Assembly: GCA_965112155.1 (NCBI GenBank)
Contig: OZ218104.1
From: Podarcis liolepis
Lineage: Eukaryota
Reading direction: 5' to 3' (one strand)
Length of the DNA stretch: 64,000 nt
Shown here: one piece after another, positions 1 through 28,821 of the stretch
How the letters are laid out: every line of letters starts with the position of its first letter
Position numbering within the stretch: the stretch's first letter is position 1
The notes under the pieces: generated by a model
What the model was told of the DNA's origin: nothing
The model's database searches: none
What the model saw: the letters and a program-made list of their open reading frames with translations, nothing else
Translations under genes and position numbers: made by a program

Positions 1-620
1 TCTTTTCCCTCCTTCCCACCGTCCCCCGTCCGGCTCCCCCCCCCCCCGCAAATGCGCGCACACACACAAAGTCCAACTCACCATGGCGGAATATGTGTGA
101 ACCAACATCTGGACAGCAGCCAAAAAAGCAACAACGAAAATCTTCTAGGAAAATGCCCCCAAACGGGGGGGGGGGGTGTTTGTTGTTGGAGGTGGATGAG
201 AATAACAACGACGAAAGCAGCCCCCAACCCTGGCGAAAGAATCCGTCAAAATCAAGTGGTGATCTGCGCTGCCATGGATGGCCTTCGCCGCCGGTAGCCC
301 AGCGAGCGGCGCGGTGGGATGGTGGCTGCTTCTTTCCCCGCGAGCCTTTCCCTTTAACAGCCTATGCTCCCGAGTTCTTGCTCCCTCTGAGCCCAATGCA
401 ACTCCATGGACTCCAGTTATAGAGGCGGGAGCGCGCCCAGAGCGCCGGGAGCGCGCGTTAAAGAGACAGAGCGCACGGCCGTCGCCTTGGGTGTTTCGAG
501 GATAGATTCGGCTTCCGCAGCGACTTCAAAACGGCGTCTGAACGCGCGGGGTCGCGGAGGAAGAGAGACCCAGCGCATGGCAGCCCAAATGTGGTGACTA
601 GGAAATAAGTAGCAGGGAGC
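1..620 (-). promoter_or_regulatory. CpG island: proximal promoter and 5'UTR of the TFAP2E MLVHTYSAM exon
   Basis: Dense CpG/GC content around the first exon; TATAA-like word on the minus strand at 417-421 (inferred TATA). Confidence 0.7.
82..108 (-). CDS. TFAP2E: Transcription factor AP-2 epsilon, first coding exon (MLVHTYSAM); rest of gene is outside the window to the left
   Basis: Minus strand reads ATG TTG GTT CAC ACA TAT TCC GCC ATG|gtgagt = MLVHTYSAM, the recognised AP-2epsilon N-terminus, followed by a perfect phase-0 donor. Position downstream of and co-oriented with NCDN matches the known TFAP2E-NCDN-KIAA0319L synteny. Confidence 0.93.
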
Positions 621-993: not shown

Positions 994-3089
994 TGCTAGT
1001 AGATCTCTGGGGCACAACTGTTTGCCAGAAATTCAAACTCTGCTTTGATTGTTGTTCTTAACTTTTATTCCCACCTCCGGGGGGGGGGGAGATTTATATT
1101 TAATAAAAGGTGAAACTTCAATACCGGTCTGTTCTCGCTACACATCCCTTCCAACCTCACTTCATGCAACCTAAAACATCTGGATGTGTAAAAGTGCCGC
1201 TTTCACAAATGGCCAATGTTTCATCCTCGAGGAGAAGGGGCATTTTATATTATTATTGACTTTTTAATGACAATACTGCGGGTTGTATCCTATCCAGAGT
1301 GGTCCCATTGAAATCAATGAGCATCACTAAGTTAGGTCCATTAATTTCGGTGGCTGTCCTCTGAGTATATTTGGTTGGCTACAACTTCAAATCCTCTTCT
1401 GCGTTTGTAAGGGGGGGGTAGATTTGGTTTTGGCGATTTCTCCTTAAACTTCAAAAGAGCGACTTAAATTTGTGAAAGAGCGGGGTGGATGGGAGAGAAG
1501 GACCCGAGCCCCACTAGTGCCTGCTGTGTCCCGGGTGGACCTGGGGAACGCGCAGGACAGAAGAGCGACGTCCCCAAGACTCTCTTTCCTGGCTGTTGGT
1601 GGACGGGTGGGGAGAGCGGCGGCTTTATCCGCGCCGCTCTTAGCTTTAATTTTATTAGGCCCAACAAGGTGATAATTCTGCCCCCACCTCCCCGCTCCCT
1701 TCCTGCTGCTTCTTCCGTATCAAAGACAGCAAGGAAAGCGAAGGCCCCGCAGCGATGGAAAAACATCGATCCGCCCAGCTAGCTCGCAGAGACTCTCAAG
1801 CGAAGCGCGACTTCCGCGGCTGCTGAAATGGACAAGGGCTTTGCTGCGCTTGGAAAAGCGCTCCAGTTTAGGACGCGTAGTAGGAGGGGGGGGGGAGTTG
1901 GGGCTTTTATTTATTTATTTATTTAAGGAAGGTTGGCTCCTTCTTAAAAAACGAAGGGCGATGGATAAACGGCATCCCGAGGAGAGAGAAGGGAGCTAGC
2001 CTCCACTTTTGATTCATCCTGAAGTTGCTGCTCTTGGGTGGGTGGGTGTGTTTTAATCAGGCCATATTCCCTTTCACAGTAGTCCCCCCGCAGTCAAAAG
2101 TTTGAAAAATTAACTCTCGTCGCCGTTTTAATCGCATTGCACGTGGGAGCCAAGGCCACAGTTTTTCACGTGGCGCGTTTTCAGTCCTGGGATTCAGTCC
2201 CGCAGACTCAAGCGCGCTATCCGCTGAGTTCAGTGTGATTATTAAGCAAGGGCTGGCGCTGCTGGGGGTATTTAGCATCGGAGCCTTGCAGCAAGTTTCC
2301 TCGGAAGTAAATCCCACGGGGTCAGCCCCCGGGGAAACGACCCATACACACGCAACTCAAGGCCCCACTTTGGATATTGAGACGCGCCTGCTATAGGATT
2401 GTGATGGGTTTAATCCTAAGGGCGCGCCTCGTCCCCCCGTCCTCTCACTTTCGGAAATGAATTTTAACATAGTTTTTTTATTCAGGTGGGTGCGAAGGAA
2501 AGGGGTGAGGGGGAGGATTGGGGTGGGGGGTGGGGGTTGTGGTTTGAAGTGCAGCAATTCGCCCAAAGGCAGATCAGTTATCTAGGTCCTAGCAAGGACT
2601 GAGTTAAGGGAACGTCTTTAGGGCTCAGGTCAAATGTGTGCAGGCCTTGTAGTCTCATCGACTTCCAGGGGGCAGTTAAGGGGGGGGGGGGACTGAAGTC
2701 TTTGCACATTAATACAAAAAGCGACTGTGACACTTTAAGCGCTGTAGGGTTTGCCTCTGGAATCTGTGCCCGCAGGACGGCACCCTTACAGTGCAACGTC
2801 TTCACTCAGAAGGAAGTCCCATTGAATTCAGTGGCACTTGCTCCCCAGTGAGTGTGCGCTGGATTGCAGCCTTAAGAATTCTCTTCATTGAGTCCGGATC
2901 TTGTCCCTGTGTTTGTCATATATACAAAGGCAGGTTGTTTTGAAAAGCTGCCCATCCAGAGAGTTAAGAAACGGTGCTTACATTTCTGACCGCAAGAACA
3001 AAATCGATGCTAGAATAACATTGGAAGCGCAGTTCCCTGGACGACCTTCGCCAGCCGGGCGCCCTCCAGATGTTGGCTGGGGCTGATGG

Positions 3090-3230
3090 GCATGGGCGTA
3101 GCCAAGGGGGAAAGAGGGGCAGCTACCCCCTCCCCAAATCAAGTAAATCAATAAAAAAATACTTAACTAACTGAGGTTCTGCTCCCCTTAATATGAAGCC
3201 TGCCCCACCACACATAAACCCTGCTGGTGT
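3090..3230 (+). repeat. Interspersed repeat fragment, second copy at ~9573-9685
   Basis: Both start CATGGGCGTAGCCAAGGGGG and share AAATCAAGTAAAT..ATAAAA..TAACTAACTGAGGTT. Confidence 0.75.
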
Positions 3231-5073
3231 GAATTGTAGTCCAAAATACCTGGAGGCCGCCACGCTGGCGAAGGTCGTCCTTAGTTCCCGAGGCCAAATC
3301 TGGGGGAAGGCCACGATTATTATTTCTTAAGGACCAAAAGAAAACAGGAAGGAGTCCCAGTAGATCCCCGCCTTCTGTTGCAGGTGGCATGATTGGCCAG
3401 CTCATTTTTCAATCTTGCAAATACCTGGGAAAGGCCAACTAGCAAACAGAGCATTTCCCCGCGCGCTGGTTAAGAGTGTCTGCCTGAAATATCACAAGTA
3501 CCAAAGAGGTATCGCAGCATGCAGAAATTATCTCCGCACAGAGCAGCTGGGGCCCGAATCCCAGAACCCTTGGGGACATCCCACCCGCTGTAGAATCTAT
3601 GACGCTTCAGCTAGATACAAACGTGTTTTTGTACGCACACACCCGCACGAGGGACGCTCACGATTAACGTTTTAGGACTGCGCAATCTGTGTACCGGTGC
3701 GTTCAAGAAGTGTCATGAACAGTCTGTGTGCCTTATAGCTAAGTGTGCAAATGTACAATTTCACACAAGCGACTGCACACGGGTAGAGACAGCTTGTACC
3801 TGTGTTCTGTGTAACGTGCGAACACGCTGCGTATGGAACTGAACGCATGCGTAATTCGCTGGTTAACAGCCGGCCTAATACAGCGTGGCCAAGAGGCGAG
3901 CGCCCCAGCTCACACTCGCTCTTGAGTAAAACACCACCGAAGATAGAGGAGCTTACCAATGAGTAAAGGTGAATGGGATCCCTCTTCACATGTACTTCAA
4001 AGAGATACAAACGTGTCTCCTCTGTCCGGAAAAACTATGTATGTCTATGTAGGAATGAGCGTGTTATAGGCATTATAGAGGGGCGCGAGGGGGAGAGAGC
4101 CAACATTAAGCTATATTCAGCAGGAAACTGAAATATACGAGCAAATATCCAACCCGGCGACCTGGCCCTTCAGAGGCCCCCCTCGCTACGATCTGTCTCC
4201 TTTTCCGTGCAACAAGATCCCGTTCTGATGTGCGCAAAATTTGTTTACCTACACATCTATAAGCTGATAGATGTGTCCATCCACCTCGCCCTCCGTTTAG
4301 TCTCCCCATCAACACACGCCCTGCTGCCTGGCCGCCCAGGCACCCATAGGTGCCTCCAAGAGGCGCAGAAAGTTAGTCTCCTTCGGCACCAAGTCTTTAC
4401 ATACCTCAACACACGCATTGAAAAGTACGAGCACCCGTGAAAGGCGAACGAGCCTTTCTCCACAAAAGCCACCTTCGCAGGATGAGACCAAAGACCCACT
4501 GAGTGGAAAAGCAAGGACGTTACAAGAGCGGCTCGTTCCTGGCACACGCGCACCATACATGTGAAGCACCTCCCTGTCCCCTCACAAAGAATCATGGGAA
4601 CTATAGTTTGCTCCCCACAGAGCACCCTTAAACTACATTTCCCAGGATAATTTTGAGATGTATGCTTTTAATGTGCGATATGGTGAGTGCACAAAGGAGG
4701 TGATGGGAAGTCGTGGCCTTCCTTGTCGTTTTGCCCCAGCAGCCTCCGACATTCAGAGGTATACTGGTCCTGTACCTGCAGGTTCCATTGAGCTATCATA
4801 GCTGAACAGTCCTTGGAAGACGTCTGTATAAGTCAGAGCTTCTCAGGTTAAGTATGTGCAGACTACCCTGGGACTAAGCCTCATTGAACATAGCAGGACT
4901 TGCTTCTTGGTAAGCACGCTGAAAAGTTGGCGCTGTTGACTCATCCGTTTCTTTCCACTAAACGAAAAAGCTGCAAACGTGACGGTCTGAAACGCAAGTC
5001 TTTCCTCGGTGTTCCAGCCCTTTGGACTTTTCTTCCCCACCCCTTTTCTGAAATTTCCCCCAAGATTTACAAT

Positions 5074-5076
<3 letters not shown>

Positions 5077-5130
<54 letters not shown>
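5077..5130. repeat. (CT)n microsatellite
   Basis: Seen directly. Confidence 0.98.
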
Positions 5131-5132
<2 letters not shown>

Positions 5133-6022
5133 CTTTCTTTCAAAAACGAAGTGAAGAGGACCCCGGGATTTGTGGACAGTTGGAAGCAATCCCAAAAGAC
5201 CTGAAGTCGACTCCACCCGCCTCCCTTTCAGCTGGAACGGAGAAAGAAGAACCGGGGCATCTAGGGATGGGTTTGCCAAAAGCTCTAAAAAGTCATAATG
5301 GACACAATACCTGAAGGCAAGGACTGCCACTGTTTATTTGGAAGTTCAAAAAGGAAAAGAGGAGAGCATAACCAGGCCGTGTGTCGCCCCTTTGGAGGAG
5401 GAAGACTGGACTGATACTCGCTTTTTATTCAGGTCTGCGAAGACAAGCTGGGTTGGAAGGATAGCATTTTAGCATCTGTTTTCCGCCACCAGCGTGGACA
5501 GAGCAATGACTAGCTCGCCCTAAAGCCGGACAGGGAACAGCAACTTTTCAAAAGGGAAAAGGGAAATGGGGCGCGCAGTTCTCTTTATGTCCCTGCGAAG
5601 ACTCGCTCGCTCCAAAACTTCTCTGGACACGATCCATCCCAAGGAGACCGCTTTGAAATCTCAACCATTTCGTGGTGGGAGAAGCGGTGGCTGGCGAGAC
5701 AGGTTTCCTTGGGAGTAAGCCTCCGGTTGAACCCATGCGAAGATTTGCTTCTGACTAGGTAGGGAGAGCCCTGGCCCTGCTCAGGACAGCGCGGGGAAGA
5801 TTCTGCTGTCCAGGCGAGCGAGTCTTTGCACGTCGAAGGAACTGCAGCAGAGCGAAAGGGGGTCGCCTTGCAGCGCCTGCGCGCTTTCTTGGAAGTAAGT
5901 CCTGTGCAAAGGGAAGGAAACTTCCTCCTTGGTTGCTGTTATTTATTTATTTGCAAAGGTGATTAATATATTTATTTGATAAGATTTACTTATATACCGC
6001 TTATTTGTGGGGGGAGACCCAA

Positions 6023-6156
6023 NNNNNNNNNNNNNNNNNNNNNNNNNNNNNNNNNNNNNNNNNNNNNNNNNNNNNNNNNNNNNNNNNNNNNNNNNNNNNN
6101 NNNNNNNNNNNNNNNNNNNNNNNNNNNNNNNNNNNNNNNNNNNNNNNNNNNNNNNN
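6023..6156. other. Assembly gap (134 N)
   Basis: Run of N. Confidence 1.
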
Positions 6157-8199
6157 GGCGCATAATCTAATATCGACTTCCTGGCAATCATGTACAGGAT
6201 CGGGCTGAACCCGTGCTTCACTATGGATTGAATTGCGCCCACGCATACTCAGTGGAGAGACCTATTTGTATCTTTAAAAGGGGGGAGGCGGGAAAAAGAA
6301 ACAGAAAAACACAGCAAGCGGCTCCCGCAGCAGGAACATAATACACACCCTCCCCGCTTCTTCCTCTGCCAGTGCCACTCCCGCCACTTAAAGTGGGCTT
6401 CATTCATTTGATGTGGCTTCTGAATCTCTTAGAGACCGTTTCAATAAATCACTGCGAAGCCTTAGGACATGGTCGCGTGGCATTTCTTACAGCTGGTTCC
6501 TTTTATTTGGGCTAGGGGGGTAGGCGGGGGAGAGAAAGGGGCAGGTGCAGGGGAAGGGAGGGGGAGACAGGGGGAGAGCCTTCAAGGGGGGAGGGGAGAA
6601 GAAATAACCACCACCACCACCGGCTCCAGTCAAATTTAGAGACACTCCTAGCTAAGGTGCAATGCTCAGCAAACTTGCTTAGAAAAGGTGGAAGCCCCCA
6701 GGGATTTTCGCTTTGGTGCACGAGGCTAGGATCAGGCACCAGGCCCCATGAATTTCGCCCGGAGAATTTTAAGCACGTGCCTGCAAACCAACGGGGTTCA
6801 AAGGCTGCAATTTTAGGCATACTTACCTGGGACTGGGACGCACTCAGCACGGGAGGGAATTATTTCCAAGTAAGCAAAGATAGGATCAGGATGGGGGAAA
6901 GGAAGCCGGACTTTGGCTGGATCGTGGCCAATAATGATAAGAAACGGCAATAAACAAACAAAACCATATTTGTTCCAGGAGCCGATGCTGCCTTCGGAGC
7001 CTTAAGGAAGCTAAATGCAGAGGTACAACTTTAAATAAACACTAAACTAAAAATAATAAATAAAAATACAATGCATTCTTTTAGGATTTCGATCAGGGTT
7101 TTTCAGTATGGGGAATATTTTTCGATTTTTATTTTTTTAAAATTTTATGTGCCGTTTGGCTATTGCTTTAATGGTGATGACTGCCACGACAGAGAATCTA
7201 TAGTCTTTTTATTATTATTAATGGTTCGCTCTGCCGGCAAATCAGCGTCACGAGGCCACTAAATATCGAGAAGAACAACGACACCCCTCTAGACAACCAG
7301 CGGGGGGGGGGAACGTTTTTTGCATAGGAACTCACAATTCGGATGACCAGGGCGTGGGGCGGGGGGTGGGGGGTGGGGAACCGATCTGGATGGTTGTTGG
7401 CCGTCAGGAGGCAACGGATCCTGCCCTGATTGAAGTCGGTTGCTTTTAGGTGAAATATCGAAAAGGAAGAGACTTAAGAGGTCTTAAAAGAACCGCCGGA
7501 GGCAAAGTAAAGTTCAGGGGTCCTCATCCGGTTCGCTTTCACATCCTTGAACTTGCTCCTAGTTGACGTGCAAGGGATTCCTCTAGAGTAAAAGGCAGGA
7601 TCCAGACAAGGCACTGGACTTCTGAAGGAGCTCCACTGATCTCACTGGGAGACGTGGGCTCTTCCCTAGATGCCTTCCATTGAGTTCCCTCCGGGGAGCT
7701 GGTGCCTAACTTGTGCTGGATTGAGGCCTTGAAAGGGACGCCGTTTTGCGTCTGATAGCTGCAGCATTTCCATGGTTCAGCTCCAGCGTCCCGAATACTT
7801 CCTGCGCACCATCTCACCACCTTAGCCCTGCAAATATTATGATGCCCATGTTACAGATGCGGGGCTGAAGCGGAGAGAGTTTGGCCCGGCACCCCTGGGC
7901 AACTTACAGCGCCACGCACACCAGCTGCCTTATTAGTTTAATGGAAATACTTTAATTAGGCAAATAAAAATAAAACACTGTTTTAGCAACTTGCATTAAT
8001 TCCGAATAAATACAATACATTTTTTGTAACTCTATTCAATATCTCCCTCGATGCTTTAGGCTCACTTAAATTTAAGCGCCAGTGACTCTCGAGTAAGTCC
8101 ATGGCAGGTTACCGGGCCTCCATCCTTCATCTTATGCCCACTTACTTGTGAGAAAGTCCCCTTGAGCTCAGTGGACTTATTTCCGAGGAATCGTGTACA

Positions 8200-9150
8200 G
8201 GATCTGGAGCAGCAACCCGAGCCTGTTTCCTCGGAAGTAAGTCCGTTTGACCTCAAGGGAATTTACTCCCGAGGGATCGTGCCTGCGCGTTGGCATCCTT
8301 ACGTGGAAATAACCCCCGCAAACATACGCGGAGCTGACTCCCAAGCGAAAACCCAGGGAGGAAAGCGAGCGTTAAATGAGAGCTCCGCTCCAAAAAGAAC
8401 GAAAACCGCCAGTCTTAACAGCCCCGATCGTCTGCTGCAGGTTTGCACGGATACAAAGCCGACTTGCGTGCAGCGGCGCTTTACTTCCGAGGAAGCACGC
8501 GCACCGGATTCTTTGCGCCCCTTATTTTCGAGGAAGTCGCTCACCTCTCGCACCGGCCGCAGGCGCGCTTGCCTGGCGCGTCCAGCTAGCGTGGCTGCTG
8601 AGCTAGGCAAGGGGGGCTTTGCACCCAGCCAGGATGCGTCCTGCTTGCTTACCTGCAGGTAGTAGCGCTCCTCTTTGATGTTGCCCGACTTCCAATGCAT
8701 CCCTGCGGTGCAAAGGTGCGAAGCGGAAAGCGTTGGAGACGGGACACCCCCAAGCCCAGCTCTCCTCTGCCTCCTTCCTTCCGTCTTGCCACTCCTGTGA
8801 GATTCAGGCGAGCCTCTCTCTCTCTCTCTCCCTCTCCCCCTCTCTCTCTCTCTGCGTGTGTGTCTGAGTGGCCAGGAAAGTTGCACCTTGGAGGCGATTC
8901 GGAGCAGCCCCCCACGAAAGACGCTCAGAGTCCAAGAGGCTGCGCGGAACCCCGAGGGGGCGGCAGCTGCTCTGGCACCTCGGAGGCCTCTTCTTCTTAA
9001 GCCCTTCTTCCTGGGTGCTGCGGGGGGATATTTGCTCTTCCAGCCCAGCCAGCCGCCCCCTCCCCAAATTCGGAGCAACACTTGCGAGAGAGATTTCTGG
9101 CTGCAAGGAGCAGAGAGACGGGTCGGCCTTGGTGGCGATCGTGCAATGCA
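8200..9150 (-). promoter_or_regulatory. CpG island: probable distal TFAP2E promoter with GA-rich leader
   Basis: CpG-dense block surrounding the 8653-8700 exon; (GA)-rich tract on the minus strand at ~8813-8853 just upstream of the ATG. Confidence 0.55.
8653..8700 (-). CDS. TFAP2E: Candidate alternative upstream first coding exon of TFAP2E (MHWKSGNIKEERYYLQ, AP-2 '1a-type')
   Basis: GGG ATG CAT TGG AAG TCG GGC AAC ATC AAA GAG GAG CGC TAC TAC CTG CAG|gtaagc: purine at -3, strong phase-0 donor, inside a CpG island. The peptide resembles MLWKLTDNIKYEDCE (AP-2alpha) and MLWKITDNVKYEEDCE (AP-2gamma). Confidence 0.65.
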
Positions 9151-9996
9151 GACTTCTCGATCTACTTACACCACCCTTTCTCTTGGGCTGCTGCTGCTGC
9201 TGCTGTGGAAGTTGAAAACAAACCCCAACAAAGCCAAGAGGAAGCCAAGAGGCCGGGAGTAGATGTCTGGGGGTGGGGGTGGGCTTAGGTGGGTTTAGGT
9301 GCCTTCCAGGGTCCTTGTGCAAAAACGAGCAGAGCAAGACATGCGAGTTCCCTAAGAGTATAAGAAGAGCTGCTGGATCAGGCCTATGGCCCGTCCAATC
9401 CAGCGTCCTGTTCTCACAGTGGCTGAACAGTCGCCTGTGGGAACCACTCAAGCAGGATTCGAACACAAGAGCCTCTCTTCCCTTCTGTGGTTTCCAGCAA
9501 CTGGTATTCTGAACCATTGCTGTGGAGGTAGAGCAGAGTCCCTATGCATGGCTGGTAGCCGTTGAAAGCCCCATGGGCGTAGCCAAGGGGGGCAGCTGTC
9601 CTTCCTAAATCAAGTAAATAAATAAAAATAACTAACTGAGGTTTTGTTCCTCCCCACCCACCGAACATAAAGCCTCCCCCTCTGCTCCTTTCATGTTTGT
9701 ATAGAAGGCTGGTTATGTTCACACTCCAGGGGTAAATGCGCAAGAAGTATCACACGCTCCAAGGACACATTGCAGCAAGGAATCAAGGAGCGTGCAAGGC
9801 AGGACTGGGGAGGGATGTAGTTCTGTAGCTGGTGTGGCCTCCGCAGAGTCCTGAAAGTTAGAGAGGCTTGGCTCTCCGCTCCCTGCCTGTGGCTTCCCCA
9901 TCTCTGCTATAGTGGTTGCTTAGAGAACAGCCCTCAATAGGGAATGGACCGGAAGACACACCCACTAACTTCTTAGCCCCGCCTACAAATTCCAGA

Positions 9997-10159
9997 CACA
10001 GAATCATAAATGGTAGAGTTGGAAGGGACCACGCAAGGATCATCTAGTCCAACCCCCTGCAATGTAAGGAATCTTTTGCCCAGTGTTGCATCCCTAAAAA
10101 TGTAGGGCTCAAACCCACGACCTCATGATTAAGAGTCTCACACTCTACAAACTGAGCTA
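9997..10159 (-). mobile_element. tRNA-Lys-derived SINE with CR1-type tail
   Basis: Minus strand TAGCTCAG..GTAGAG..TGAGACTCTTAATC.. head plus GATTCCT..ATTGCAGGGGGTTGGACTAGATGATCC..CCCTTCCAACTCTA..ATGATTCTGTG tail. Confidence 0.8.
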
Positions 10160-10351
10160 CCTGTGGATGACTCAGGCTATGTGCACACCACCAGCAGTTC
10201 AACTTGCATTTTCAATTGACTGTAAACACCAGAGAGGGAGCAGAGACTGTCTTCATCTGATGTGCACCACCAGGGCTGGCCCCCTCAAGTATTTTATGGT
10301 GAGGGGGCTGAAGTGACCTCAGACCCTAGGAGTTGGCTCCTATACACACTA

Positions 10352-10566
10352 CAATGGTACATCGGGTTACAGACGCTTCAGGTTACAGACTCCGCTAACC
10401 CAGAAATAGTACCTTGGGTTAAGAACTTTGCTTCAGGATGAGAACAGAAATCGCACGGCGGCAGCGGGAGGCCCCATTAGCTAAAGTGGTACCTCAGGTT
10501 AAGAACAGTTTCAGGTTAAGAACGGACCTCTGAAATGAATTAAGTTCTTAACCAGAGGTACCACTG
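10352..10566 (+). mobile_element. Non-autonomous Tc1/mariner (Tigger/pogo-like) MITE, family A
   Basis: TA|CAATGGTACATCGGGTTA ... TAACCAGAGGTACCACTG|TA: terminal inverted repeats with TA target duplication. Confidence 0.85.
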
Positions 10567-13496
10567 TACTGTACTTGCTTTGTTTTCCTGCACCAAATTT
10601 CTGTTCAGTGAAGCTGTGATCTGCGCATGTGCAACAGCTGCCAGAAATGTACACACCTCATCTTAACTGTGCCAGAAGCTGGTCTGAGGGGCTATTGTAT
10701 ATGATCCATCAGCAGCAATCGTCAAGAAACTACAAGAATACTTAGGGATGGTAGCTGGCAATCAAACAGAGCACTGGCAGTGGAATAAATGGTAAATGTG
10801 TGCAGAGCCTCAGTGGCAGGTACTGTGAGTATGCTCAGAAGCACTCTTGTCTCTTCCAGAGATGTAGGCAATGCTAGTCTGTTGCAGCACTGTTCTGACA
10901 CTCTAATAACTGCGCCACACCGTTTCTCTCTCTCTCTATGACCTAAATTAGATAAGATGGGTTGCTAAACTTCAATATCATTGATTGGAAGAAGCTGGGA
11001 GTGGGGCTAGATCAAACATTTGCTCCCCCTTATGACCAGCTAAATGCTGGCTGTTACAGTGCCCAGGCAGCTCAATGGACCAGACTAGGAATAGCAAATG
11101 CAGGCAGCTACTAGGATTGTATGCTACCCCCCCCCACAAGCTATATTGGCACAATAATATAAATATAATACTAGTAATAATAAGTATTTGTTAGATTCCC
11201 AGCTCCATCACAATGTTTGCATGCCATCTTTACCAGGTGTTTCCCATTGGTCATCATTCTCACCTGTTCCCTTTCCTCCCACCTTATCATCTTGCGCCTG
11301 TGCTTCGGTGGTAGTGGTACAGTAGTAGTGGTATCCATGGGATACAGACTCCAATGGAAGTGGCAAAATTCCCTGCGCTTGTGGATGAAAACTGTGTTAT
11401 TGGAGGAGATTAAGCAAACCACAAACCTCACTCCCCATCCTAATTTTCAGACCAAAAGGCTCTGGCGTGCCAAAGTGTTTGGGGAGCAACGGGAAGATGT
11501 TGGAAGCCTATTAAGGAAAGTATAACCAAAAGGATTTTCTAAGGATTTTCAAGAGGAGTCCACTTTAAGATTTGCATGGCTCTTATAAGATTACCTCTAC
11601 AAGTCTACATGTACTCTGATTGGGATTAAAAATAATAATAATCTGCAGCAAGAAAAACTGAATTCTGCAACCTTATGCAAATTAGATAAATCTGTATAAC
11701 CATAGTTCGCATTATTTATTCTGTTTCTGCTCGTTACAGGAAGGGAGATGGAACTACAGAGGCCACTTGCTGACCACCGGAAAATTAATCAACTCTGTGG
11801 TTTTTGAGATTTAGCCAGGCATTGTCCATACACTCTCAAGCATATTATTGCAACCATGAGAACTAGATGGTTTTAAAAAGAAAAGAGCAAAAGCAGAGAT
11901 TCTCAGGAATTTCATACTGAATATGGAACCTGGTTGTTTTCTATGCTTGTGTGGAATGGGAACATACACACATTCTACCCAAAAGCACCCTTCCCCTGAA
12001 ATTCTGATAAGTTCAGCTTTCAATAGATGTTTTGGTTCTCGTATTGTTTTGGAAAGTGCAGATTTGATACATTCCACTTAGAATATGAATAAAAATTTTC
12101 CACCATCCCTAGTGGCGGGAGTTGGAATCCAGCAGCATCAGAATCCACCATGTTTTGTGGACTTCTCTTTACACTACAGCAGATGTGGGGAGAATCTTTG
12201 GCCCTCCAGTTGTTGCTGGACTCCAACTCCCATCAGCCAGCGTGGCTGGTGGCCATGGATGATGGGAGTTGTAGTCTAAGTCTAATAGCATCTGGAGGAC
12301 CAAAGGTTCTCCAGCTCTGGTTTGTAACAACGGTATGTCAAACTGAGCTGATCAGAAATACTGATGCTTTTGAGGAATAATTGCAAGTGGTCTGAAACAC
12401 TAGGAGTAGGGAGCCTTCCTCAAACAGTGCCTCTTGCTACACAACCAAGGTCCATTAAAAATTACTCAGGTGTGGTCAAGAGATCAGCCCTCTCTTTCTG
12501 GGCCTCTCTGACTTCTGTTTTTGGGCAGGAGCTGCTGTTATAGTAGCCTGTCCACTTCATTCCAGAAATCTGCTTGCTTGAAAAATGGGAGGGGGGATCA
12601 TTTGCGTGTGAAGAGGGTTAGGAGCAGGGAAACACTTTAGCTTAAACTGTAATACACTATGATGTGTGATAGACATTAACAAACAGAATCCCACATTAAA
12701 TTTAATTTCATTCCACTCTTCCTGCCCGGAGCGATTGTTCCCTTCATTTTCATTTTTCCCCTGAATTCCCACAACTCAGGCCTCTTTGAATTCCAGGTTT
12801 AATTAACAATGCTCATTAAATGAATTTTTATTCCTTTCTTTTAATATTACTCTGCCACCTGTCTTTAGACATTGAGGGCTGACTGTTTATTCTAATTTAT
12901 TTCTATTAAATATGGCATTAAAAGGAGCAATGAAAGCAGGGCGGGGGAGAGGCAGGGAAGGGGGGGGCGAAGGTAGAAGTGAAACCAGAGGAGCTATTCC
13001 TCCCTCCCTCCCTCCCTCCCCAGTTCCTGCTCTGTCTCTAACAAAGACAACCCAAAATGAATTTCAAGGACACAGTGCCGAAAGTTCTGTGGGATTGCAT
13101 TTGTTTTCCACCAGATCTGTTTCATTTGCTAAAATTGGATCAGACATGCTATATTTTGTAGGGATTTTCCACCTAATTCTTAAAGCCCATTGCTCATCTA
13201 GTAGTCTGTGTATGATTCCAATTCTCTTTTTACAGGGAAAGAGTCAGAACAATGCGGGGGGGGGGGCAACTCTGTGGGGAAAGAAAGGCTGCAGAGATGC
13301 AGCGATGTGGTTTGTTTTGTTTAAAAAGGCAGAGGTGGACCATGAGAAGGAACAAAAGCTAATACCGTTCTCTGCTCATCCTGATTTGTCACAACTGCCC
13401 CCACTTGCAATGGATCTTCCATATACAGGGGGAGGATATCGCTGAACTGGGATGAACAACAGGAGGAAGTCGTCGTCGTCATCATCATCATCATCA

Positions 13497-13817
13497 TTTA
13501 TTATTTATACTCTGCCCATCTGGCTGGGTTTCCTCAGCCACTCTGGGAGGCTTCCAATAAAATGTTAAAAATACAATAAATCATCAAACATAAAAAACTT
13601 CCCTAAACAGGGCTGCCTTCAAATGTCTTCCAAAAGTCAGAAAGTTGCTTATTTCCTTGACATCTGATGGGAGGGCGTTCCACAGAGTGGGTGCCACTAC
13701 CGAGAAGGCCCTCTGCCTGGTTCCCTGTAACTTTGCTTCTCGCAGTGAGGGAACCGCCAGAAGGCCCTCAAAGCTGGACCTCAGTGTCTGGGCAGAATGA
13801 TGGGGGTGGAGACGCTC
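13497..13817 (-). mobile_element. L2-type LINE 3' end
   Basis: Minus-strand peptide RAFSVVAPTLWNALPSDVKEI...FGRHLKAALF, then a 3'UTR with AATAAAT-type tail. Confidence 0.8.
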
Positions 13818-14003
13818 GACTTCATGTCCTACTTGTAAGTTGACAGAGACTGCTTGCTGACAGGAACTCAGTATTGGACTAGAAGGATCTTTGGTCTGCA
13901 CCAGCAAAGCAATTGTTGTGTTCCATCTGAATACAGTATTACAAAACATATTAGCAGGTTAGCAAGCTTAAGCAGTGGAAAAGATGAGAAGCAGGATGAT
14001 CCC

Positions 14004-14187
14004 AACCTGAAACTGTTCTTAACCTGAAGCACCACTTTATTTAGCTAATGCTGCTGCGCCACCGGAGCATGATTTCTGTTCTCATCCTGAAGCAAAGTTC
14101 TTAACCTGAGGTAATATTTCTGGGTTAGCGGAGTCTGTAACCTGAAGCATATGTAACCTGAAGCGTATGTAACCCGAGGTACCACTG
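14004..14187 (-). mobile_element. Family A MITE, truncated copy
   Basis: Same internal sequence as the other copies; one TIR (GAGGTACCACTG|TA). Confidence 0.8.
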
Positions 14188-14327
14188 TAATTGCATGCAA
14201 GCCATTCTTGGAGCCTTTTGGCCTAAGGAGTAAGAGTAAATATACTCTTAACAAACATTCTTGGGGATGGCCCAGTCATATATTTCTAATAGGAGACAGG
14301 ACTGGGTATTTGTTGTGTATGCTTATA

Positions 14328-14569
14328 CAGTGGTACCTTGGGTTAAGTACTTAATTTGTTCTGGAGGTCCGTTCTTACCCTGAAACTGTTCTTAACCTAA
14401 AGCACCACTTTAGCTAATGGGGCCTTCCACTGCTGCCGTGCTGCCGCCACACGATTTCTGTTCTCACCCTGAAGTAAAGTTCTTAACCCAAGGTACTATT
14501 TCTGGGTTAGCGGAGTCTGTAACCTGAAGCGTATGTAACCTGAAGCATATGTAACCTGAGGTACCACTG
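14328..14569 (-). mobile_element. Family A MITE, full copy
   Basis: TA|CAGTGGTACCT ... AGGTACCACTG|TA. Confidence 0.88.
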
Positions 14570-15073
14570 TATAGCACATCTTCCAAATGCCCAACACTGA
14601 GCAAATCCTTCCCATGTAGTCTGTGCAGAGGCGGAGCTAGCTGCTGCGGCACCTGAAGCGGCACACATGCTGTGCACCCGGAGGCGGGGCTAGCCACTTG
14701 TGGGGGCTGGGCTAGCATCCCAGGGGGCCAGGGGGCCGATGTCAACCCCCCCCCCCGATGACACCTGGGGCAGACCGCACCAACCGCACCCGCTTCCTCT
14801 GCCAATGAGTCTGTGACAACCCACAGTGCATCTGCCATAGCAACTGTGTCCATGGCAGTCTTGTGTTAAAAGGGGTTAATGCTTTGCCACCTCAGCCATG
14901 ATGTCCACCCCCCTTCTCCTGGCTGTGTTCATAAATGTAGCTGGGTGGCTGGGAAGGCTTGTGCAGTTTCCCATGTGAAAACCATACCAGTTTTTATTAT
15001 GGCATGTGTCCATGTAAACATGTAAGCTGCTTTACAGAGAATCAGACAGCAGCCTCAGGTGGACCGTTGCTTT

Positions 15074-15206
15074 GAATCACTGAATCATAGAGTTGGGAAG
15101 GAGCAGCCCGAGTCCAACTGCCTGCAGTGCAGGAATCTTTTACCCAACGTGGGGCTCAAACCCACAACCCTGAGATTAAGAGCATCAGGCTCCACCGACT
15201 GAGCTA
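15074..15206 (-). mobile_element. tRNA-Lys-derived SINE with CR1-type tail, second copy (tail-only pieces at ~26288-26361 and ~42424-42455)
   Basis: TAGCTCAGTCGGTGGAGCCTGATGCTCTTAATCTCAGGGTTGTGGGTTTGAGCCCCACGTTGGG then AAAAGATTCCTGCACTGCAGG. Confidence 0.8.
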
Positions 15207-15294
15207 TAAGAAGCTTCAGGCAGAAGCTCTGCACAGCCTGTCCGGAATGGAATTGGAGGTACTGATTTTGGTGAAACGTGTCAGCTTTCTATAA

Positions 15295-15317
15295 CATCAT
15301 CATCATCATCATCATCA

Positions 15318-15370
<53 letters not shown>
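15295..15370. repeat. Compound (CAT)n(TAT)n microsatellite
   Basis: Seen directly; abuts the Penelope remnant. Confidence 0.98.
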
Positions 15371-15373
<3 letters not shown>

Positions 15374-16182: not shown

Positions 16183-16218
<36 letters not shown>

Positions 16219-16301
16219 CCCCCCCCCCCTCTCTCTCTTTCTCTCCCCCTCCCCCTTACCTGGGACTAAGCACCACAGAATTCAACAAGACTTACTTCCA
16301 A

Positions 16302-20746: not shown

Positions 20747-21183
20747 TCACTGCTCAGAGAGACATTGTTCCAAGGCAGCCATGCCATACAGGCTGGCCAT
20801 TTCCAAACCCCGGTGCTGTTGGATCATCTCCAAACACGGCTGGCTAGCTCGGGCCAGCTCCACCAGGATGCCTTGGAAAGCACGGACAACTTCCAAGTCT
20901 ACGGACGACGGCGCCACGCGGCCCAGCAAGGCCAGCAGCTCCTGAAGCCAGCCGGAGCGCAGGACGTCCTGCGGCAGCCACAGGAAGAGGGGCACGCAGC
21001 TAGCGAAAGCCTGCATGCCCAGAAACCACAACTCACGGATGGCTGGCCAGGCCGCCTTATAGGTTGGAGAAACGCTCATGGTCACCTTCTCCCCGTCGAG
21101 GTCAGTCTGGGCCACGTGGGCTTCTGCCAGGAAGCGGATGGCAGCATCAAAGAAGCCCTCAGATTCTGGAGTCCCCTGCAGAC
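20747..21183 (-). CDS. NCDN: Neurochondrin last coding exon (GLQGTPESEGFF...MAALEQCLSEQ*)
   Basis: ctcag|GT CTG CAG GGG ... TGA at 20749-20747; C-terminus MAALEQCLSE is neurochondrin-like. The six exons sum to 2151 nt = 716 aa + stop. Confidence 0.96.
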
Positions 21184-21289
21184 CTGAGTGAAAAAGAAAG
21201 GAGGAGAAAGGGAGGAAAAAAGAGAGATAGAGAGAGGTAATGTGGGCATTCACCAACAACATATGCTTCCTTGCAAGGTCTGGGAAGGT

Positions 21290-21576
21290 ACAGGAAGCAG
21301 TGATGGTCACTGACTTGGATGGCTTCCGAAGAGGATTAGGCAAATTCATGGAGGAGAGTGCTATCAATGGATACCAGCCAGGATGGCTATACTCTGCTTC
21401 TACAGCTGGAGGCAGAAAATGGTTCTGAATACCAGCTGATGGAAGCTGCAGGAAGGGAGAGGGCTCTTGTGCTCGAATTCTGCTTGCTGGTTTCCCACAG
21501 GTGCCTGGTCGGCCTCTGTGTGGCTTGGATGCTGGACTACTGGCCAGATCCATCAGTCTCTTCTTAGGTTCTTATG
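21290..21576 (+). mobile_element. CR1-type LINE 3' end in the last NCDN intron; related pieces at ~9358-9565 (-) and ~19170-19360 (+)
   Basis: Peptide QEAVMVTDLDGFRRGLGKFMEESAINGYQ (CR1 ORF2 C-terminus) followed by GGATGCTGGACTA..TGGCC.GATCCA 3'UTR. Confidence 0.75.
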
Positions 21577-22907
21577 GCATTGCCTTCCTACTACTTCCTC
21601 AGGTTGAAACCCCTCTAGGAATATTTTAACTTGAGCCAGGCCAGTACAAAGAAGAGACCTGAGTTTCCCCCCATGACCCCTTCCTTGGTCAGTTTTCAAA
21701 ACTGTTTCCTGAATAGGCCCAGAAGTGGTACGCCACCCCCTCCCTTTTCAGGTGACACTAATCAGAACTGATTGCAGGAGTACATTCAGTGTCATAACAG
21801 GGTTCACCATTGTAAGATGCAGTCCCAGCCTTTTGCCTGGGAGGCCTGGGGCCAGACTCAGCCATGACTCTCACTGGCTGACCTCAGGACTAGCCAGTGA
21901 CGCCGGGTATAGGAGGAGGAGGCTTCAGCTCCCCCAATATTGAGGGGGCCATCACCCCCTGACACTGCTGCGCACTCTCTGCACACCTCAGCCTCTGCCT
22001 AGCAGCCAGGCCAGGGGGGGGGATGAGCAAGCGCAGAGATAGCCCTCCGCACGTCCCGCCCCCACCCAGTACCCGCCGGGCAGCATCACCCCTGGGACAA
22101 GCTGCTCTTTTCCATCTTAATTTACCTCACAGTGCTGCTGCAAGGACAGAATGGGCTAGCACCTCCATGTGCATTATGCCTAGTTTTTCGGAGGAGGGAA
22201 AGATACAAACTTAATACTTAAAATAAGTACATTTTAATTAGCCCAACTGGGATGGCTGTGTGGGCTTTGGGCCACTTGCTGTGCTGAGTGATCAGCAGCT
22301 TATTCTGAGGGAACTGCCTCTGTGAGGCTTCTCTTGCTTGCACCCTCTCATCCCAGCTCTTTTCCTTCTCATTTGACTCCCCATATAATTAGAGCGCACT
22401 GTTTGTCAATTCCCAACTCGGGAGGGTAGTGGAGGAGGAAAAAGAGTGTCTCATGTTGGGCAACTCAAGAAAGAAAACGATACTATACGGAGTTGCCATG
22501 GAGATGGATGGTAATGAACCACTTGTCTGCCCACACAGGCCTAGCTTTCACTGAGCTAATAAGCCTGTGCCTGGGCTATACCACTTCAGGCTACTGCGGG
22601 GGTGCTCGCATGCTGTTCTATGCAAAAACAAAAAACCCAAAATAATCCCCACACAGTGAAAAACTAGTGCATCAGGGAGGAGGTTTGGCTAGAACCCTTC
22701 TCTTATGATGTGCTGGTTTTCTACATGAAAGGGTTTTGGCCTTTTGTTTTGTAAGGACAGCATTCAGGTCATGTGGGCACACACCTGCACTCTGAAGAGG
22801 TACAGCCTAGCAACAGATTTGCCGCTGAAGAAAAACTAGGGCATGGTTACATTTTGTTGACTTCCTACTCAGTTTTGGCAGTGGAAGCTGACAGCGCTAT
22901 TTCTTGC

Positions 22908-23050
22908 CTGGGTAAGCAAACAGCCTCTTGGACATCATGAGTCCCAGTGTTGCCACATTGGCTGTCAGGCCGAGATGTTCTCTCTGTGGCAGCAGAGAAG
23001 GAAGGGACTTCAGCAATGTGTCCATCAAGGTCGCAAAGCAATCTTCTCGG
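22908..23050 (-). CDS. NCDN: Neurochondrin coding exon 5 (REDCFATLMDTL...ANVATLGLMMSKRLFAYP), ends in a GC donor
   Basis: 143 nt, ctgcag|CCG ... CCAG|gcaaga; phase 2 to 1 is what joins the last exon in frame. Confidence 0.9.
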
Positions 23051-23526
23051 CTGCAGGTGAGAGAGAAAGCAAAACACAAGATGCTTTTGGAGTTAATCAT
23101 ATCTGCAGTCCACCCTTCACCCATAGTACTCAAGGTTATGTGCATAAACTTATCTATTTTTGGTCCCACACCAGCTTGAGGGGTTTGGCTAGGACCCTAT
23201 GAGCTTCATAACTTAGTGGGGATTTAAACCCTGGGTGAAGAATTAAACCATGATTTCCTCAGTCATGTGTGAATTCATTTGTTACATTTTTAGGTGTACA
23301 TCTCTTACTAAAGAAATTCATTGAGCAAGAACTTGATGAATATTTAAAGTATTATATTCCATGCTCTTCATTTTGTATTGTATTACAAACATTATTATAC
23401 ATATTAAAATAATAACATATTTTTTAAAAATATGTGAATAAGAAGTCTGCATTTGGAAACAGAGGTTTGCCTCTGTAACATGTTAAGGTGTCGTTAACTC
23501 ACTTGCATTCCTCCTCTACCCATTAC

Positions 23527-23751
23527 CTGATTAAATCTGGAGCAGTCACAACCAAATTAAGGAAAATTTCACAACACGTCTGAAGGCTGGTTTCCACAGT
23601 AGTCGATGTAGTCAGGGCATCTGTATTTGAAACAAATATCTCCCACCGGTACAAGAAATATTGGCACAGGAGTACCGGCGCCCCCTCTGAAATGAGGATT
23701 CCACGGGGTCGATCCTCTGCAGTCAAGTGGCTTAAGCCAGGTAAGAGGAAT
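23527..23751 (-). CDS. NCDN: Neurochondrin coding exon 4 ([16 protein letters not shown]...[12 protein letters not shown])
   Basis: 225 nt, tttcag|ATT ... AG|gtaatg, phase 2 to 2. Confidence 0.96.
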
Positions 23752-26610
23752 CTGAAAGGGGACATGGAAGTGTTGGAACTAAGTTAAAGGCAGAGGGGTT
23801 TTTTTCCATTTATTTAACGCATTTATATACCCAAGCTCTTAAGACAAAAAAAGTCCCTCGAGCAGCTTACAAAAACCACTAACTAGATAGTCCATGGCCT
23901 CAAGCTTCTGACAGCAAAGTTTAACAAGGAAGTTGTTACGACCATGGTGAAATTAAAATGCATTTCAACCTGGAATATGGATTTTCTATAGTAAAAAACC
24001 CAAGCCAGTTACAAAAGATTTGCTACTGAAGAGCTGCCACCTTAGGTCAGCTCAACAGCAAGCCCAATGCCATACCCTAGCACTGGCTACTGCTGAATAT
24101 ATTCAAAAAAAGGCCCAACAATTTTTGCACAAAGTAATGAGACCCTGCTGCACCTTCTGCCAATCTGACCAATAACGGAGCCTCTCCCATTATATTTGCA
24201 AAACATGACTAGGGGTGGGAAATTAAATATCAAAGTAAGATCTGAAATGTTCAGACTGCTTATTATAATGGGGTCTGGGCATTTTGTCTTGTTTATCCCA
24301 TAAAGTTTGTTTCTTGAAAGCATTTGTACCCAATCTTTCCTAAGTCTTTCTTTTCTTTTCCGGGCAGCCCACAATGATTAACACATAATAACAGACCGCA
24401 GGAGGACAGGTTTATAAAGTTAGCCTTAGATACCCCTGGCTCCTTTCTTACACTAGTCAAAGTCCTGATTATTTTTTTAAGGAGGAAATTATGTAAGTCC
24501 TAACACAATGAAGGGAGAAGTAGTTGCATAGAACTGGGACAACTACCAGAGGCACCGCTCCATACCCCTGCCTTGCCACCTAAGCAGATGGCAGGTAGGT
24601 GTACTGTAGCTCGTGACACTGCAGCAGCTAGGCAGTATTACACTACACATTATATCCTTATTGTAAAATGCAGGAGAGCGAACCGGCTCCAAACAATTCA
24701 AACATTCTTAGAAGAGTACAGCCATACAAGGGAGCTCAGGAACCTGGTTAAAGGTTGTAGGTCACCCAGGATGGAGGCCAATTTTGGAGGAGGGGACTGG
24801 GTATGCAGTGACTGTTGGGAATCACATACACTCCAGCAAGACCTGTTTTAACAGTCTGGGAACATGACAAGGCTGCACATGGTTGGGTCTTCTCTCCCCT
24901 CCTTTGATGCTAATTGGTAGGGACTCCGTGCCCAATCCTTAACAGAGCCAGGACAACATCCTACCTTTGGTTCTCAAGTGACACAGCTGACCGCAGCTGA
25001 AGGGCTGGTTTCAACTCAAGAAGCTTATTGGTGGTCTGGCCTTCCCACAGCTTTTATTACTGGTCCCACTAGAGTGGGAGTTGGTGATCATTGGGACTGA
25101 TAGGATAGAAGGGAGGATAATCAACAGCAGGTGAGGCCAGAGCCAACTAATTCCAGGTTTGCCCCCTGCTGAAGTATATATGGCGTGACAGCACTGAGGC
25201 TAAGAAGGAGGAAGCCGACAACCAGTGCTGTTAAGTAAGAAGGCAGGCAGGCAGGACTGGCTATGGGGCAGGCTGAAGTTGGTGGGGCAGTGCCCCATTT
25301 GCCTTAATGAACCAGCCTTTGTTGCTTAAAAGATGGGAACAAAGGAACTTGATGGAACTTTGCATATTTAAAATCAAGGTGGATTTGCATCCTGGAAGCT
25401 GTTCCTACATGGCTCCTGATCCTACATATCCAACAAAACCAACCTCAGAGCTGAGAGACTGGTGAAAAGAGGAAGAAAGAAAAGGAAAGGAAAGGAAAGA
25501 AAAGAAAAGAAGAAAAGCAAGCAGAGAGAGTGAACTCAAAGTAAACTGAATCACAGGAGTCAATATTGATGGGTTGATTTTTCCAGACCCAAGCTTGTAA
25601 TGCCATTCCACATCAGGAAGGTTGCAAAGAGTTCTCCAGGGAACACAGATGACTCACTTGGGAACCTTTGTGCTATAGTCAGGCGCCCACGAACAAATGC
25701 TGCTCCCACATGGTCTCAGGATTAGAAACCATCAGTAAGAGCTGTTGCATAAGCCTTTCTAGTGTTCATCATGCCATTGCTGATGGGTGGCCAGAAGCTG
25801 CCTTAGATAGACAAGAATGCTTGGCAAGTAAGCAGCTTACCCTCAACAGCATCCTGGTCCAGGGTAGAGGGGAAGGGGGCAGCACTACTGAAGGAGTCCT
25901 GCTAACTGCTAAGTTTTATACACGCTAATTGCAACAACAATAAATCTACTGCTATCAAATACTTGGGCTTCCAATTACCATCACTTCTGTCTTGCCTGGA
26001 ATTCAGCCTCAGTTTCCCTGCTTGTATCCAACTGATCACAGCCACTGCTGTTGCTCTTGGTTGCCTAGCTAAAATATGCAGCACTGGGAGTCACCAACAC
26101 TCTCCCCCACAGTTTCATGTAAATGTTTAAAAAAGAGCCCTGGTGGCAATATAAGACCCCTGTAAAAACTCTACACCTCTTATCTCCGGAGGAGAGTAAG
26201 CTGCCACCCCAAGATGGAATCTAGCCCAAGTCATTTCCACACTGATAACTAAGATGACAAAAGAAAAGCTTCATATTATGCTTTAGTTGAGATTCTTGCA
26301 TTGCAGGCGGTTGGACCAGATGACTCTTATGGTCCCTTCCAAGTCTACAATTCTATTCTGTGAAGAACGTTTCCAAAAATGTAGCAGCGCAGAATTTTAT
26401 CAGTGTATCAGCGAGGCAGAGGTTTGCCTAAGGCCCCTCAAGGACTTTAATGTCCAAGCTGAAACTCCAGCCAGAATGTTCCTGATCCTCAGCTCATCAT
26501 TAGAAGTGTTTAAGCAGAATAAACCTAAAGTGGTTCTGATTCCCAAACTGGAATCTAGAAGGCATAAAGCAGCAAAACAACATATTTCAACACTCAACGC
26601 TGTAATTTAC

Positions 26611-26852
26611 CTTATAGCATCTCCTTGCCAAACAGGAGGCTGGATGCTGCTTTGCCCAGCCTGCTCTGCCTCCTGCTGCAAACTACTTCTGACTCTCTTC
26701 TCCTCCTCAAACCGCATCTTGGCATAGTAGATGAGGAAAGGCAGAAGGTCACAGATCTCTTGCTTGAGGGAAGATGTCTCTTCAGCCAGCCAGGCCCCAA
26801 GGATTCGAACAGAGGCAAAGATGAAAGGGTCGTCCAGCTTCTTTCGCCCTAC
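26611..26852 (-). CDS. NCDN: Neurochondrin coding exon 3 (VGRKKLDDPFIFASVRILGAWLAEETSSL...GDAIR)
   Basis: 242 nt, cacag|GTA ... AG|gtaaat, phase 0 to 2. Confidence 0.96.
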
Positions 26853-27444
26853 CTGTGGGACAGAGAAAGCAGTCACAAACATGTTGTAAATCAGTGAGGC
26901 TGGGATGAGTGACATTGTGAGCCAGACAAAGGAAAGTGAGCATGTACCATCTGTTAAATCCAAGCTGATAAGCCGCAGAGCCTGCAGGACCACAAGCACT
27001 TCAGCTACTTGGCCAAAACAGCAATCTGGGGAAACAGTAGATTCTTTCCACCTTTTCTACCATCCTTGATGGATTTCAAAGGCCTTGATTGGCTCCCAGT
27101 TCAGTCTTCCCTACATAAACAAAAGTTAAGGCAGCCCCCATTTCAGAGCTCTATGCCCTGCTGTGTTATTCAGAACTTCCACATTTTCATTTAGTCCAGG
27201 GATGCCATTTCTATCTCCCCCTTTCCTCCTCTGCTCCTTGTCCTGTACTATGGTTCATTTCCCTCAATACTAGTTTGGGCTTCCTACCCACAAGAATTGC
27301 CTCACTTGGACACCAGATGACTCCTACCAACCTGGCACAGTTGACAGCCTCGGACCCTCATAAAGGTAAGACTGTTAACTGCTTCCCGAACTCCTGAGAG
27401 AGGCAGCCTTATAAGATTGGAAGATTTTGGGAGTCTTACTATAC

Positions 27445-28422
27445 CTGTCTCAAGTAGTGTATGACAGCCCCGAAGGCTTCCTCCAGGATCCCCACCAACT
27501 GCACTTTCTGCGCCTCCAGCAGCAAAGAACCTTTCTCTTTTGTGCACTCCACAATTGCCGTCTCCATCAGAACGTAGCAAGCAGCCATCAGCTCCTGCTT
27601 CTTGTCCACCTCTGCCAGATCCAGCTCCTCCAGAGTCAGGCGGACTTCGACACATGCCAGGTTGGACAGCAAGGCAAAGAACTTGCTGCCAGCACCCCCT
27701 CCTTGGATCCACTCTGAGCCACAGGCTTGTGACAGGCAGGCTGCCAGCTTCAAGGCAGGGTCCCGCTGGGAAGTGCTCAGCTTGCTGGTCAGGATGCTAG
27801 CCAGGCCTCGGTAGAGGGGCAGGAGGCATTCGGTGTTGGGCGAGAGAAGGGGAGGGATGAAGCGGGGCAGCACTTCACACAGCTGGAATTTGGTCATGTC
27901 TTCAGCCTTCTGGAATTCTAGACTAAGTACGTTCAGCACCCCCATGAGGTCAACAGTGGCTCTCTGCCAGCACTTTGCTTCAGCTGCGATCAGAAGCCCC
28001 ACAAGCAGCTTAAAGGCCTGATCAAAGCCATAGCCATGCTTCACATAAGCCCTGCACAGTGCTGGGACAGTGCCCCTGTTCACCAACTCTCTGGGACCCT
28101 TTGGAGTGGCCATGATAGCCCTGAGGCACTGATAAGCATCATCAATCATGGCATTGCAAGAAGCATCTCCTGGCTTGCAAGTTGAAATCACATCATTGAA
28201 AACCGGGATTTTGTTAAGGACCTGGGGATGCCGAGCCAAATCTGGATCGGTGCAGAAGCAGGCCAACAGGGTGAGGCCCAGGGCTTGGAATGTGTGCTGT
28301 GTGCAGCCCTCAGGGGCATCCTTAGACGTCAGAAGCCTGTTTGGGAATGTGAAACCAACCGCGTCAAAGATCCTCCGGCGGGTTTTGGAATTGATTTCTC
28401 CAGCTTTTGCTGCTTTGGTCAC
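27445..28422 (-). CDS. NCDN: Neurochondrin coding exon 2 ([10 protein letters not shown]...AVIHYLRQ)
   Basis: 978 nt open frame, ttcag|GTG ... CAG|gtatag; contains [19 protein letters not shown] and NLACVEVRL, typical of neurochondrin. Confidence 0.97.
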
Positions 28423-28821
28423 CTGAAGGATAAAATCAGGAGGCATCAGAAGCGTGCAGTTTTGTGACATGGCTTGACTGAGCTAGCCATTTCCCTTCCT
28501 CAGCTATAATTGCTTACTAGGCCTCCCCCTCCCTAAGTTCCTCTTGCATGCCACAGACATGGAAGGCTTTGCTCTTTCCTTGTTACAAGGATCTGTGTCC
28601 ACCTTTAGTCTACAGGACAAGAGTGGATGCTATTATCTAACCCAAGTCCTTATCTTAAGCAATTACTAGTAATTATGACTCCCATTTTACAGGTAGAAAA
28701 CTACTGATCACCCAGCCAGCCAGCCAGCTACCATGAATAGCTGGATTCAAAAAGCTTATCTTCATTCCCAAATTTGCTTCCAAAGCAGTCTATTCCTGCC
28801 AGTGCAAGGCCATATTCTTAC

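Follow-up and report, generated by a model that had tools for sequence, protein, structure and literature searches.

A transcribed exon upstream of TFAP2E in the lizard Podarcis liolepis bears a putative AP-2 1a-type start and splices to an exon that closes its reading frame

The TFAP2E locus and its 16-codon upstream exon

The window, that is the whole stretch of DNA analysed here, comprises 64,000 nucleotides of contig OZ218104.1 from the Podarcis liolepis assembly GCA_965112155.1. Close to its first letter lies a minus-strand exon of nine residues, MLVHTYSAM, which reads from an ATG at 108 and ends in phase 0 (Table 1). In the six-frame translation of the window this is the only AP-2 start apart from the 16-codon exon described below. 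The remainder of TFAP2E, exon 2 included, falls below coordinate 1 and is thus outside the window, which carries only 9 + 16 residues of TFAP2E type; the open frame around MLVHTYSAM extends over about 48 codons. The neighbouring neurochondrin gene was recognized by three matches to PF05536 (E-values of 3e-122 at 27442-28470, 2.6e-19 at 26610-26999, and 2.5e-06 at 20750-21553). It is followed by a KIAA0319-like gene on the opposite strand, so that the two may be arranged head to head, as judged from the one KIAA0319-like exon viewed. These neighbours fit the human gene order, KIAA0319L-NCDN-TFAP2E. With the nine residues of the MLVHTYSAM exon and this synteny, the naming of the locus as TFAP2E in the original prediction appears sound and is upheld.

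Table 1. Features of the TFAP2E locus and its surroundings in the window
Feature	Coordinates	Strand	Basis or remark
TFAP2E MLVHTYSAM exon (1b-type start)	82..108	-	gtgagt donor; pyrimidine-rich cag/ATG tract directly before the ATG
Second exon of the upstream transcript, least extent	7674..7827	-	X3 record 9 junction; translation G, then stop
Intron, 825 nt, GT..AG	7828..8652	-	Joint in X1, X3, X23
16-codon ORF segment, M.WK..NIK.E	8653..8700	-	3' end of exon 1; CAG before phase-0 donor
Exon 1 of the upstream transcript, least extent	8653..9048	-	X1 record 7 and X3 record 9: 8652-8804; X3 record 10: 8869-9048
Simple repeat, GA-rich, in the 5' leader	8805..8868		Sequence; skipped in read alignment
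Neurochondrin (NCDN) exons	20750..28470	-	PF05536; upstream neighbour, TFAP2E strand
KIAA0319 N-terminal-domain exon	53205-53855	+	Pfam search

Read on the minus strand from 8700 to 8653, the 16-codon exon runs in whole codons from ATG to CAG (ATG CAT TGG AAG TCG GGC AAC ATC AAA GAG GAG CGC TAC TAC CTG CAG) and translates to MHWKSGNIKEERYYLQ. The donor CAG/GTAAGC lies at 8653/8652, with gtaagc beginning at 8652, and follows the complete codon 16, that is, in phase 0. The start codon, its 16 codons, this donor, and the phase shared with the MLVHTYSAM exon had been described in the original prediction and were confirmed. Residues 8-11 of the peptide, I-K-E-E, agree with psi-K-x-E, as expected from the SUMO consensus that had been claimed for the exon. 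The ATG at 8700 has a G at -3 and is 8,592 bases away from the ATG at 108.

The exon is embedded in GC-rich DNA (GC 0.55-0.62 across 8200-9199, and about 0.6 for 8400-9199). The CpG observed/expected ratio amounts to 0.50-0.58 at 8600-9199, which covers the exon and its leader, and to 1.01-1.26 at 8200-8599. The CpG island attributed to the exon is thus roughly correct as a description of the region, but CpG richness peaks immediately downstream of the 16 codons. Exon 1 is transcribed from a GC/CpG-rich promoter 8.6 kb upstream of the MLVHTYSAM exon.

The minus strand contains no ATG between 9341 and 8701, so that the ATG at 8700 is the first AUG of the upstream RNA. As a sign of translation or selection an ATG-free leader was dismissed as weak, since the plus strand is nearly as poor in this triplet, with one ATG between 8701 and 9262.

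Directly 5' of the ATG of the MLVHTYSAM exon, 22 of 30 positions are pyrimidines, and the tract (within 82-140) ends in cag/ATG; among all AG sites within the first 20 kb, 14.8% have a pyrimidine count of 19 or more. Judged by these letters, the tract could serve as an acceptor, in which case a distal transcript would enter the MLVH exon in frame. The 27-nt MLVH exon would then be an internal micro-exon, readable from a phase-0 upstream exon. A run of 134 N (6023-6156) interrupts the long intron that separates the first exons from each other.

Transcription, splicing, and reading frame

Twenty public sequencing runs are listed with part of 8560-9000. Four of these, from three studies, were aligned to 6400-10400: X1 and X3 are Logan contigs from two studies and are RNA by guess, and X23 and X24 are raw RNA-seq reads from a third study. 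One canonical joint is present, 7826-8652, at which 825 bases with CT..AC on the plus strand, corresponding to GT..AG on the minus strand, are skipped. It occurs in three of the four runs (X1, one contig with a depth of 18.9; X3, one contig with a depth of 3.45; X23, two reads from two starts) and in none of the reads from X24, for which the mean exon depth is 1.01. The X3 contig (record 9) has 320 letters and joins 8804-8652 to 7826-7674. Six letters fit on either side of the joint, and the RNA sequence is the same either way.

The first mate is always on the plus strand among the raw reads at 7070-8811, including those of X23 and X24 over exon 1, and by the usual sign this indicates a minus-strand RNA. 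Raw-read coverage of the exon is low (mean depth 2.78 in X23 and 1.01 in X24). In X1, a contig of the exon covering 8652-8804 at a depth of 16.5 ends at the donor, and the unspliced contigs are shallower (8337-8681 over the donor, depth 3.85; 7804-8198 over the acceptor, depth 4.26). Since the depth of the junction contig matches that of the exon contig, compared to 3.85 for unspliced sequence across the donor, the junction represents most of the exon use in this run.

The segment 8653-8700 is the end of a real, transcribed minus-strand first exon, and the donor 8653/8652 is used. Exon 1 appears to be continuous across the skipped repeat at 8805-8868 and to reach at least 9048. We consider it highly improbable that the joint reflects genomic DNA (a deletion allele or a retrocopy) or contig mis-assembly rather than splicing. 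The guessed RNA status of X1 and X3 would leave room for such an artefact, as would the X1 contigs that pass unspliced over donor and acceptor. However, the skipped segment begins precisely with GT and ends with AG when read on the transcribed strand, the read direction is uniform, and the same joint was obtained from two contig sets of two studies and from two raw reads of a recorded RNA-seq run.

The original prediction regarded the exon as an alternative first exon of TFAP2E, spliced to exon 2, and proposed junction reads as the check. Transcription on the TFAP2E strand and use of the donor agree with this, and reads from the 8653 donor do exist; the sole junction, however, leads to 7827 and closes the frame, so that the splice to exon 2 is unsupported. 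A join to exon 2, which lies off the window, could show only as a loose end at 8653, and none is found among the loose ends listed, at low depth and in unspecified tissues.

The exon that starts at 7827 continues the frame from 8700 with GGC (7827-7825) and TAA (7824-7822), that is, with glycine and a stop codon. More stops occur in the same frame beyond 7822 when the exons are read one by one. Given that the first AUG is at 8700, splicing from 8653 to 7827 results in a 17-codon ORF and does not yield an AP-2 epsilon N-terminus. The observed RNA cannot encode an AP-2 epsilon isoform. A Pfam search assigned no family to the longest ORFs of both exons (8302-9081 and 7542-7820), and an Rfam search found none within 1-20000. 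The upstream transcript is thus a spliced RNA that lacks a long ORF, as is characteristic of spliced non-coding or short-ORF upstream transcripts. A repeat origin of the second exon was considered and rejected: when 7000-9500 was compared to the window by BLAST, one 76-nt match was obtained (8129-8201 vs. 911-986).

Beyond the second exon, the reads of X24 extend down into the 7606-7739 bin. Minus-strand reads of X23 are found at 7070-7337 (mean depths of 2.56 and 1.83), and this run has no reads at 7338-7605. Polyadenylation-like signals are present in this region (AATAAA at 7213 and 7133, ATTAAA at 7172), the AATAAA signals spanning 7213-7128. As for splicing, the sequence offers donor-like sites, at which exons would end at 7646 and 7336, and resembles an acceptor at 7289/7288. 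The upstream RNA may have its last exon in the region 7070-7337.

Several further details of this region are recorded here. Four X23 reads have G>T at 7159. For contigs from both X1 and X3, agreement with the window stops at 7376, beyond which the contigs run on for 80 and 255 letters, respectively, with the same A/T-rich sequence. The depth of the 7338-7376 bin is 14.2 in X1 and 3.46 in X3, a ratio close to that of exon 1. This divergence at 7376 could reflect another exon, an insertion allele, or a cross-match of C-rich sequence. Compared with the window, the X3 contig has 8 mismatches over the 153 letters of the second exon (7674-7826) but 1 over the 153 letters of exon 1 (8652-8804). Several of the second-exon differences (7694, 7710, 7722, 7781, and 7789) are shared by X24 reads. 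They point either to a divergent haplotype or to relaxed constraint on the second exon.

On the distal side, the first mate of the raw reads at 9348-9615 is on the minus strand, which suggests a plus-strand RNA, possibly from divergent transcription out of the same GC-rich promoter. The depth of the X1 contigs rises to 138-913 at 9348-9615, where the loose ends, at 9429 and 9449, point to a repeated element. Very high depth was encountered in all four runs at 10018-10151 and 10286-10400, with a maximum of 83,709 in X1, and loose ends occur on either side and in either read direction. The segments are expressed high-copy repeats, presumably transposon pieces.

Likeness to AP-2 1a-type first exons

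Three N-terminal forms of AP-2 alpha with differing activity are described by Berlato et al. (2011; PMC3219183), and isoform 1a alone is sumoylated and repressing. Its main SUMO site, required for repression, is IKYE, with lysine 10 at the centre. According to the same paper, AP-2 gamma is the homologue of isoform 1a and has a homologous SUMO site, AP-2 beta is represented by ESTs of both the 1a and the 1b type, and AP-2 epsilon has a 1b-like start only; the authors hold the 1b type to be the most ancient (PMC3219183). The background given with the original prediction (a SUMO lysine in TFAP2A 1a, its link to repression, and a 1b-like AP-2 epsilon) matches this account.

The likeness of the 16-codon peptide to a 1a-type start, as had been noticed at the outset, was compared with chance. 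The family motif was taken from the text of the original prediction as well as from the description of "IKYE centred at lysine 10" (PMC3219183). In the six-frame translation of the window, M.WK.{2,3}N[IV]K.E is expected 2.8e-5 times, and for the loosest version (M.WK, with psi-K-x-E within the next 10 positions) the expectation is 0.011 per window; these figures are optimistic and the true odds are less extreme, since the motif was defined after the sequence had been seen. None of the four versions of the motif occurred in 300 windows simulated with a first-order Markov model. In addition, the pattern "ATG, 8-25 open codons, GTRAG in phase 0" has seven candidates on the minus strand at 108-20700, among them the 16-codon and the MLVH exons.

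The match is too good for chance, and we infer kinship with the AP-2 1a-type first exon. Position and strand, the M.WK..(.)N[IV]K.E motif, and the phase-0 GT donor are all those of such an exon. Based on its sequence, the 16-codon exon is very probably a descendant of an AP-2 1a-type exon, and in this respect the original prediction holds up well.

A fortuitous likeness would mean that an ordinary promoter-upstream lncRNA has a first-exon ORF that happens to recall the AP-2 1a peptide. We regard this as improbable. The observed RNA is indeed non-coding in effect, the motif was defined post hoc, and the order of the exons is reversed relative to human TFAP2A. The expectations and simulations given above nevertheless speak against a coincidence, and so does the setting: the peptide adjoins an AP-2 gene, is on its strand, begins at the first AUG, ends at a phase-0 consensus donor, and is one of seven candidates in 20.6 kb.

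Protein databases were searched with the 288-codon open frame at 8302-9165 (minus strand), of which residues 146-185 were scored; such a search finds near-identical sequences and misses divergent versions. Among the proteins of 158-504 aa in a collection of 5.8 billion, none has three 5-residue words in common with the exon region. For the full-length neurochondrin representative P0002, 287 proteins were retrieved from the collection with E <= 1e-50, and all those named among the best 120 of the 287 are from birds. The bird matches show that recent NCBI vertebrate annotations are contained in the collection, and it is thus unlikely that an annotated isoform with the 16-codon exon, or a near-identical one, is present there. 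Alternative first exons are a known feature of AP-2 genes. In the literature texts searched, neither an alternative nor a 1a-type first exon is described for TFAP2E.

The exon might nevertheless function as an alternative start of TFAP2E. Wherever the gene is expressed, 8653 would be spliced to exon 2 and the protein would obtain a 1a-type N-terminus with a SUMO acceptor, and the junction to 7827 would be used elsewhere. This is conceivable but rather doubtful. It would be consistent with a motif far beyond chance, with the first AUG, with a phase-0 donor compatible with exon 2, and with an exon on the right strand that has its own promoter. Also, both TFAP2A and TFAP2B have 1a and 1b starts, which makes an ancestral pair plausible (PMC3219183). 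It conflicts with the sole junction from the donor, which leads to a stop after one codon, with an X1 junction as deep as the exon itself, and with the lack of a loose end at 8653 among those listed. The negative protein search also counts against it, as does the divergence of the peptide from the paralogue version quoted in the original prediction (a residue is missing ahead of NIK, and the tails are not alike). A SUMO-switchable AP-2 epsilon isoform, as suggested by the sequence, is thus an unproven candidate possibility that runs against the one splice observed.

Interpretation and comparison with known systems

The best explanation, to which we assign an even chance, is that a 1a-derived exon now serves a non-coding or short-ORF upstream transcript. 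An ancestral 1a-type AP-2 first exon has most likely survived at TFAP2E as a descendant exon. Exon 1 (from at least 9048 to 8653) is made from the GC/CpG-rich promoter, and its near-consensus donor joins it to the exon at 7827. In the sampled tissues, the 16-codon exon would serve as first exon either for a spliced non-coding RNA or for a short-ORF leader from a distal promoter. Such an RNA might either end near the AATAAA signals at 7213-7128 as a lncRNA or run into TFAP2E, for example via the acceptor-like tract before the MLVH ATG.

Some observations are at odds with this explanation. The traits of a coding exon are present (the first AUG, the G at -3, and the same phase-0 donor as in the MLVH exon). 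Without selection on the peptide, it is difficult to see how such a motif could have persisted after the divergence of the paralogues, and this is the strongest argument for a coding use that is current or was lost only recently. Furthermore, the reads are thin, X1 and X3 are RNA by guess, and exon 2 is off the window.

Only tentatively, we propose that a 1a-type exon with a SUMO motif predates the split of AP-2 alpha, beta, gamma, and epsilon and is still alive at the lizard TFAP2E gene. It might be coding in cells that were not sampled (neural-crest, pigment, or olfactory cells), or its 17-codon ORF might be translated and gate a distal TFAP2E promoter. If this is true, the published view of the 1b type as the sole ancient start of AP-2 epsilon (PMC3219183) needs revision. 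A recognizable 1a-type exon at TFAP2E would place both first exons before the paralogue split, and would also mean that AP-2 epsilon has lost its SUMO-regulated form in some lineages or retains it unannotated. The exon would be relevant for lizard biology only if a coding isoform is shown; at present, the result is a modest one at the level of annotation.

Among known systems, TFAP2A isoform 1a is the closest in sequence features: in both cases, a short ATG-bearing first exon of an AP-2 gene has psi-K-x-E near residue 9-10 (PMC3219183). The lizard exon also coexists with an MLVH-type (1b) exon that has its donor in the same phase. In contrast to TFAP2A 1a, the only splice seen misses exon 2 and closes the frame, and the lizard peptide lacks one residue ahead of NIK and has another tail than the peptide quoted in the original prediction. 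The lizard 1a-like exon is located upstream of the 1b-type exon, whereas in human TFAP2A the 1b-type exon is upstream of 1a, which would weaken the case for positional homology. With AP-2 beta and gamma, more than one paralogue retains the 1a type, whereas AP-2 epsilon is reported as 1b-like only (PMC3219183).

The upstream transcript also resembles promoter-upstream spliced lncRNAs and leaders with short uORFs, in that it has its own CpG-rich promoter, at least two exons, a canonical intron, and a first AUG that opens no more than 17 codons, and lies on the TFAP2E strand a few kb upstream of a developmental gene. Unlike these, its short ORF bears the N-terminal motif of the paralogues of the neighbouring gene.
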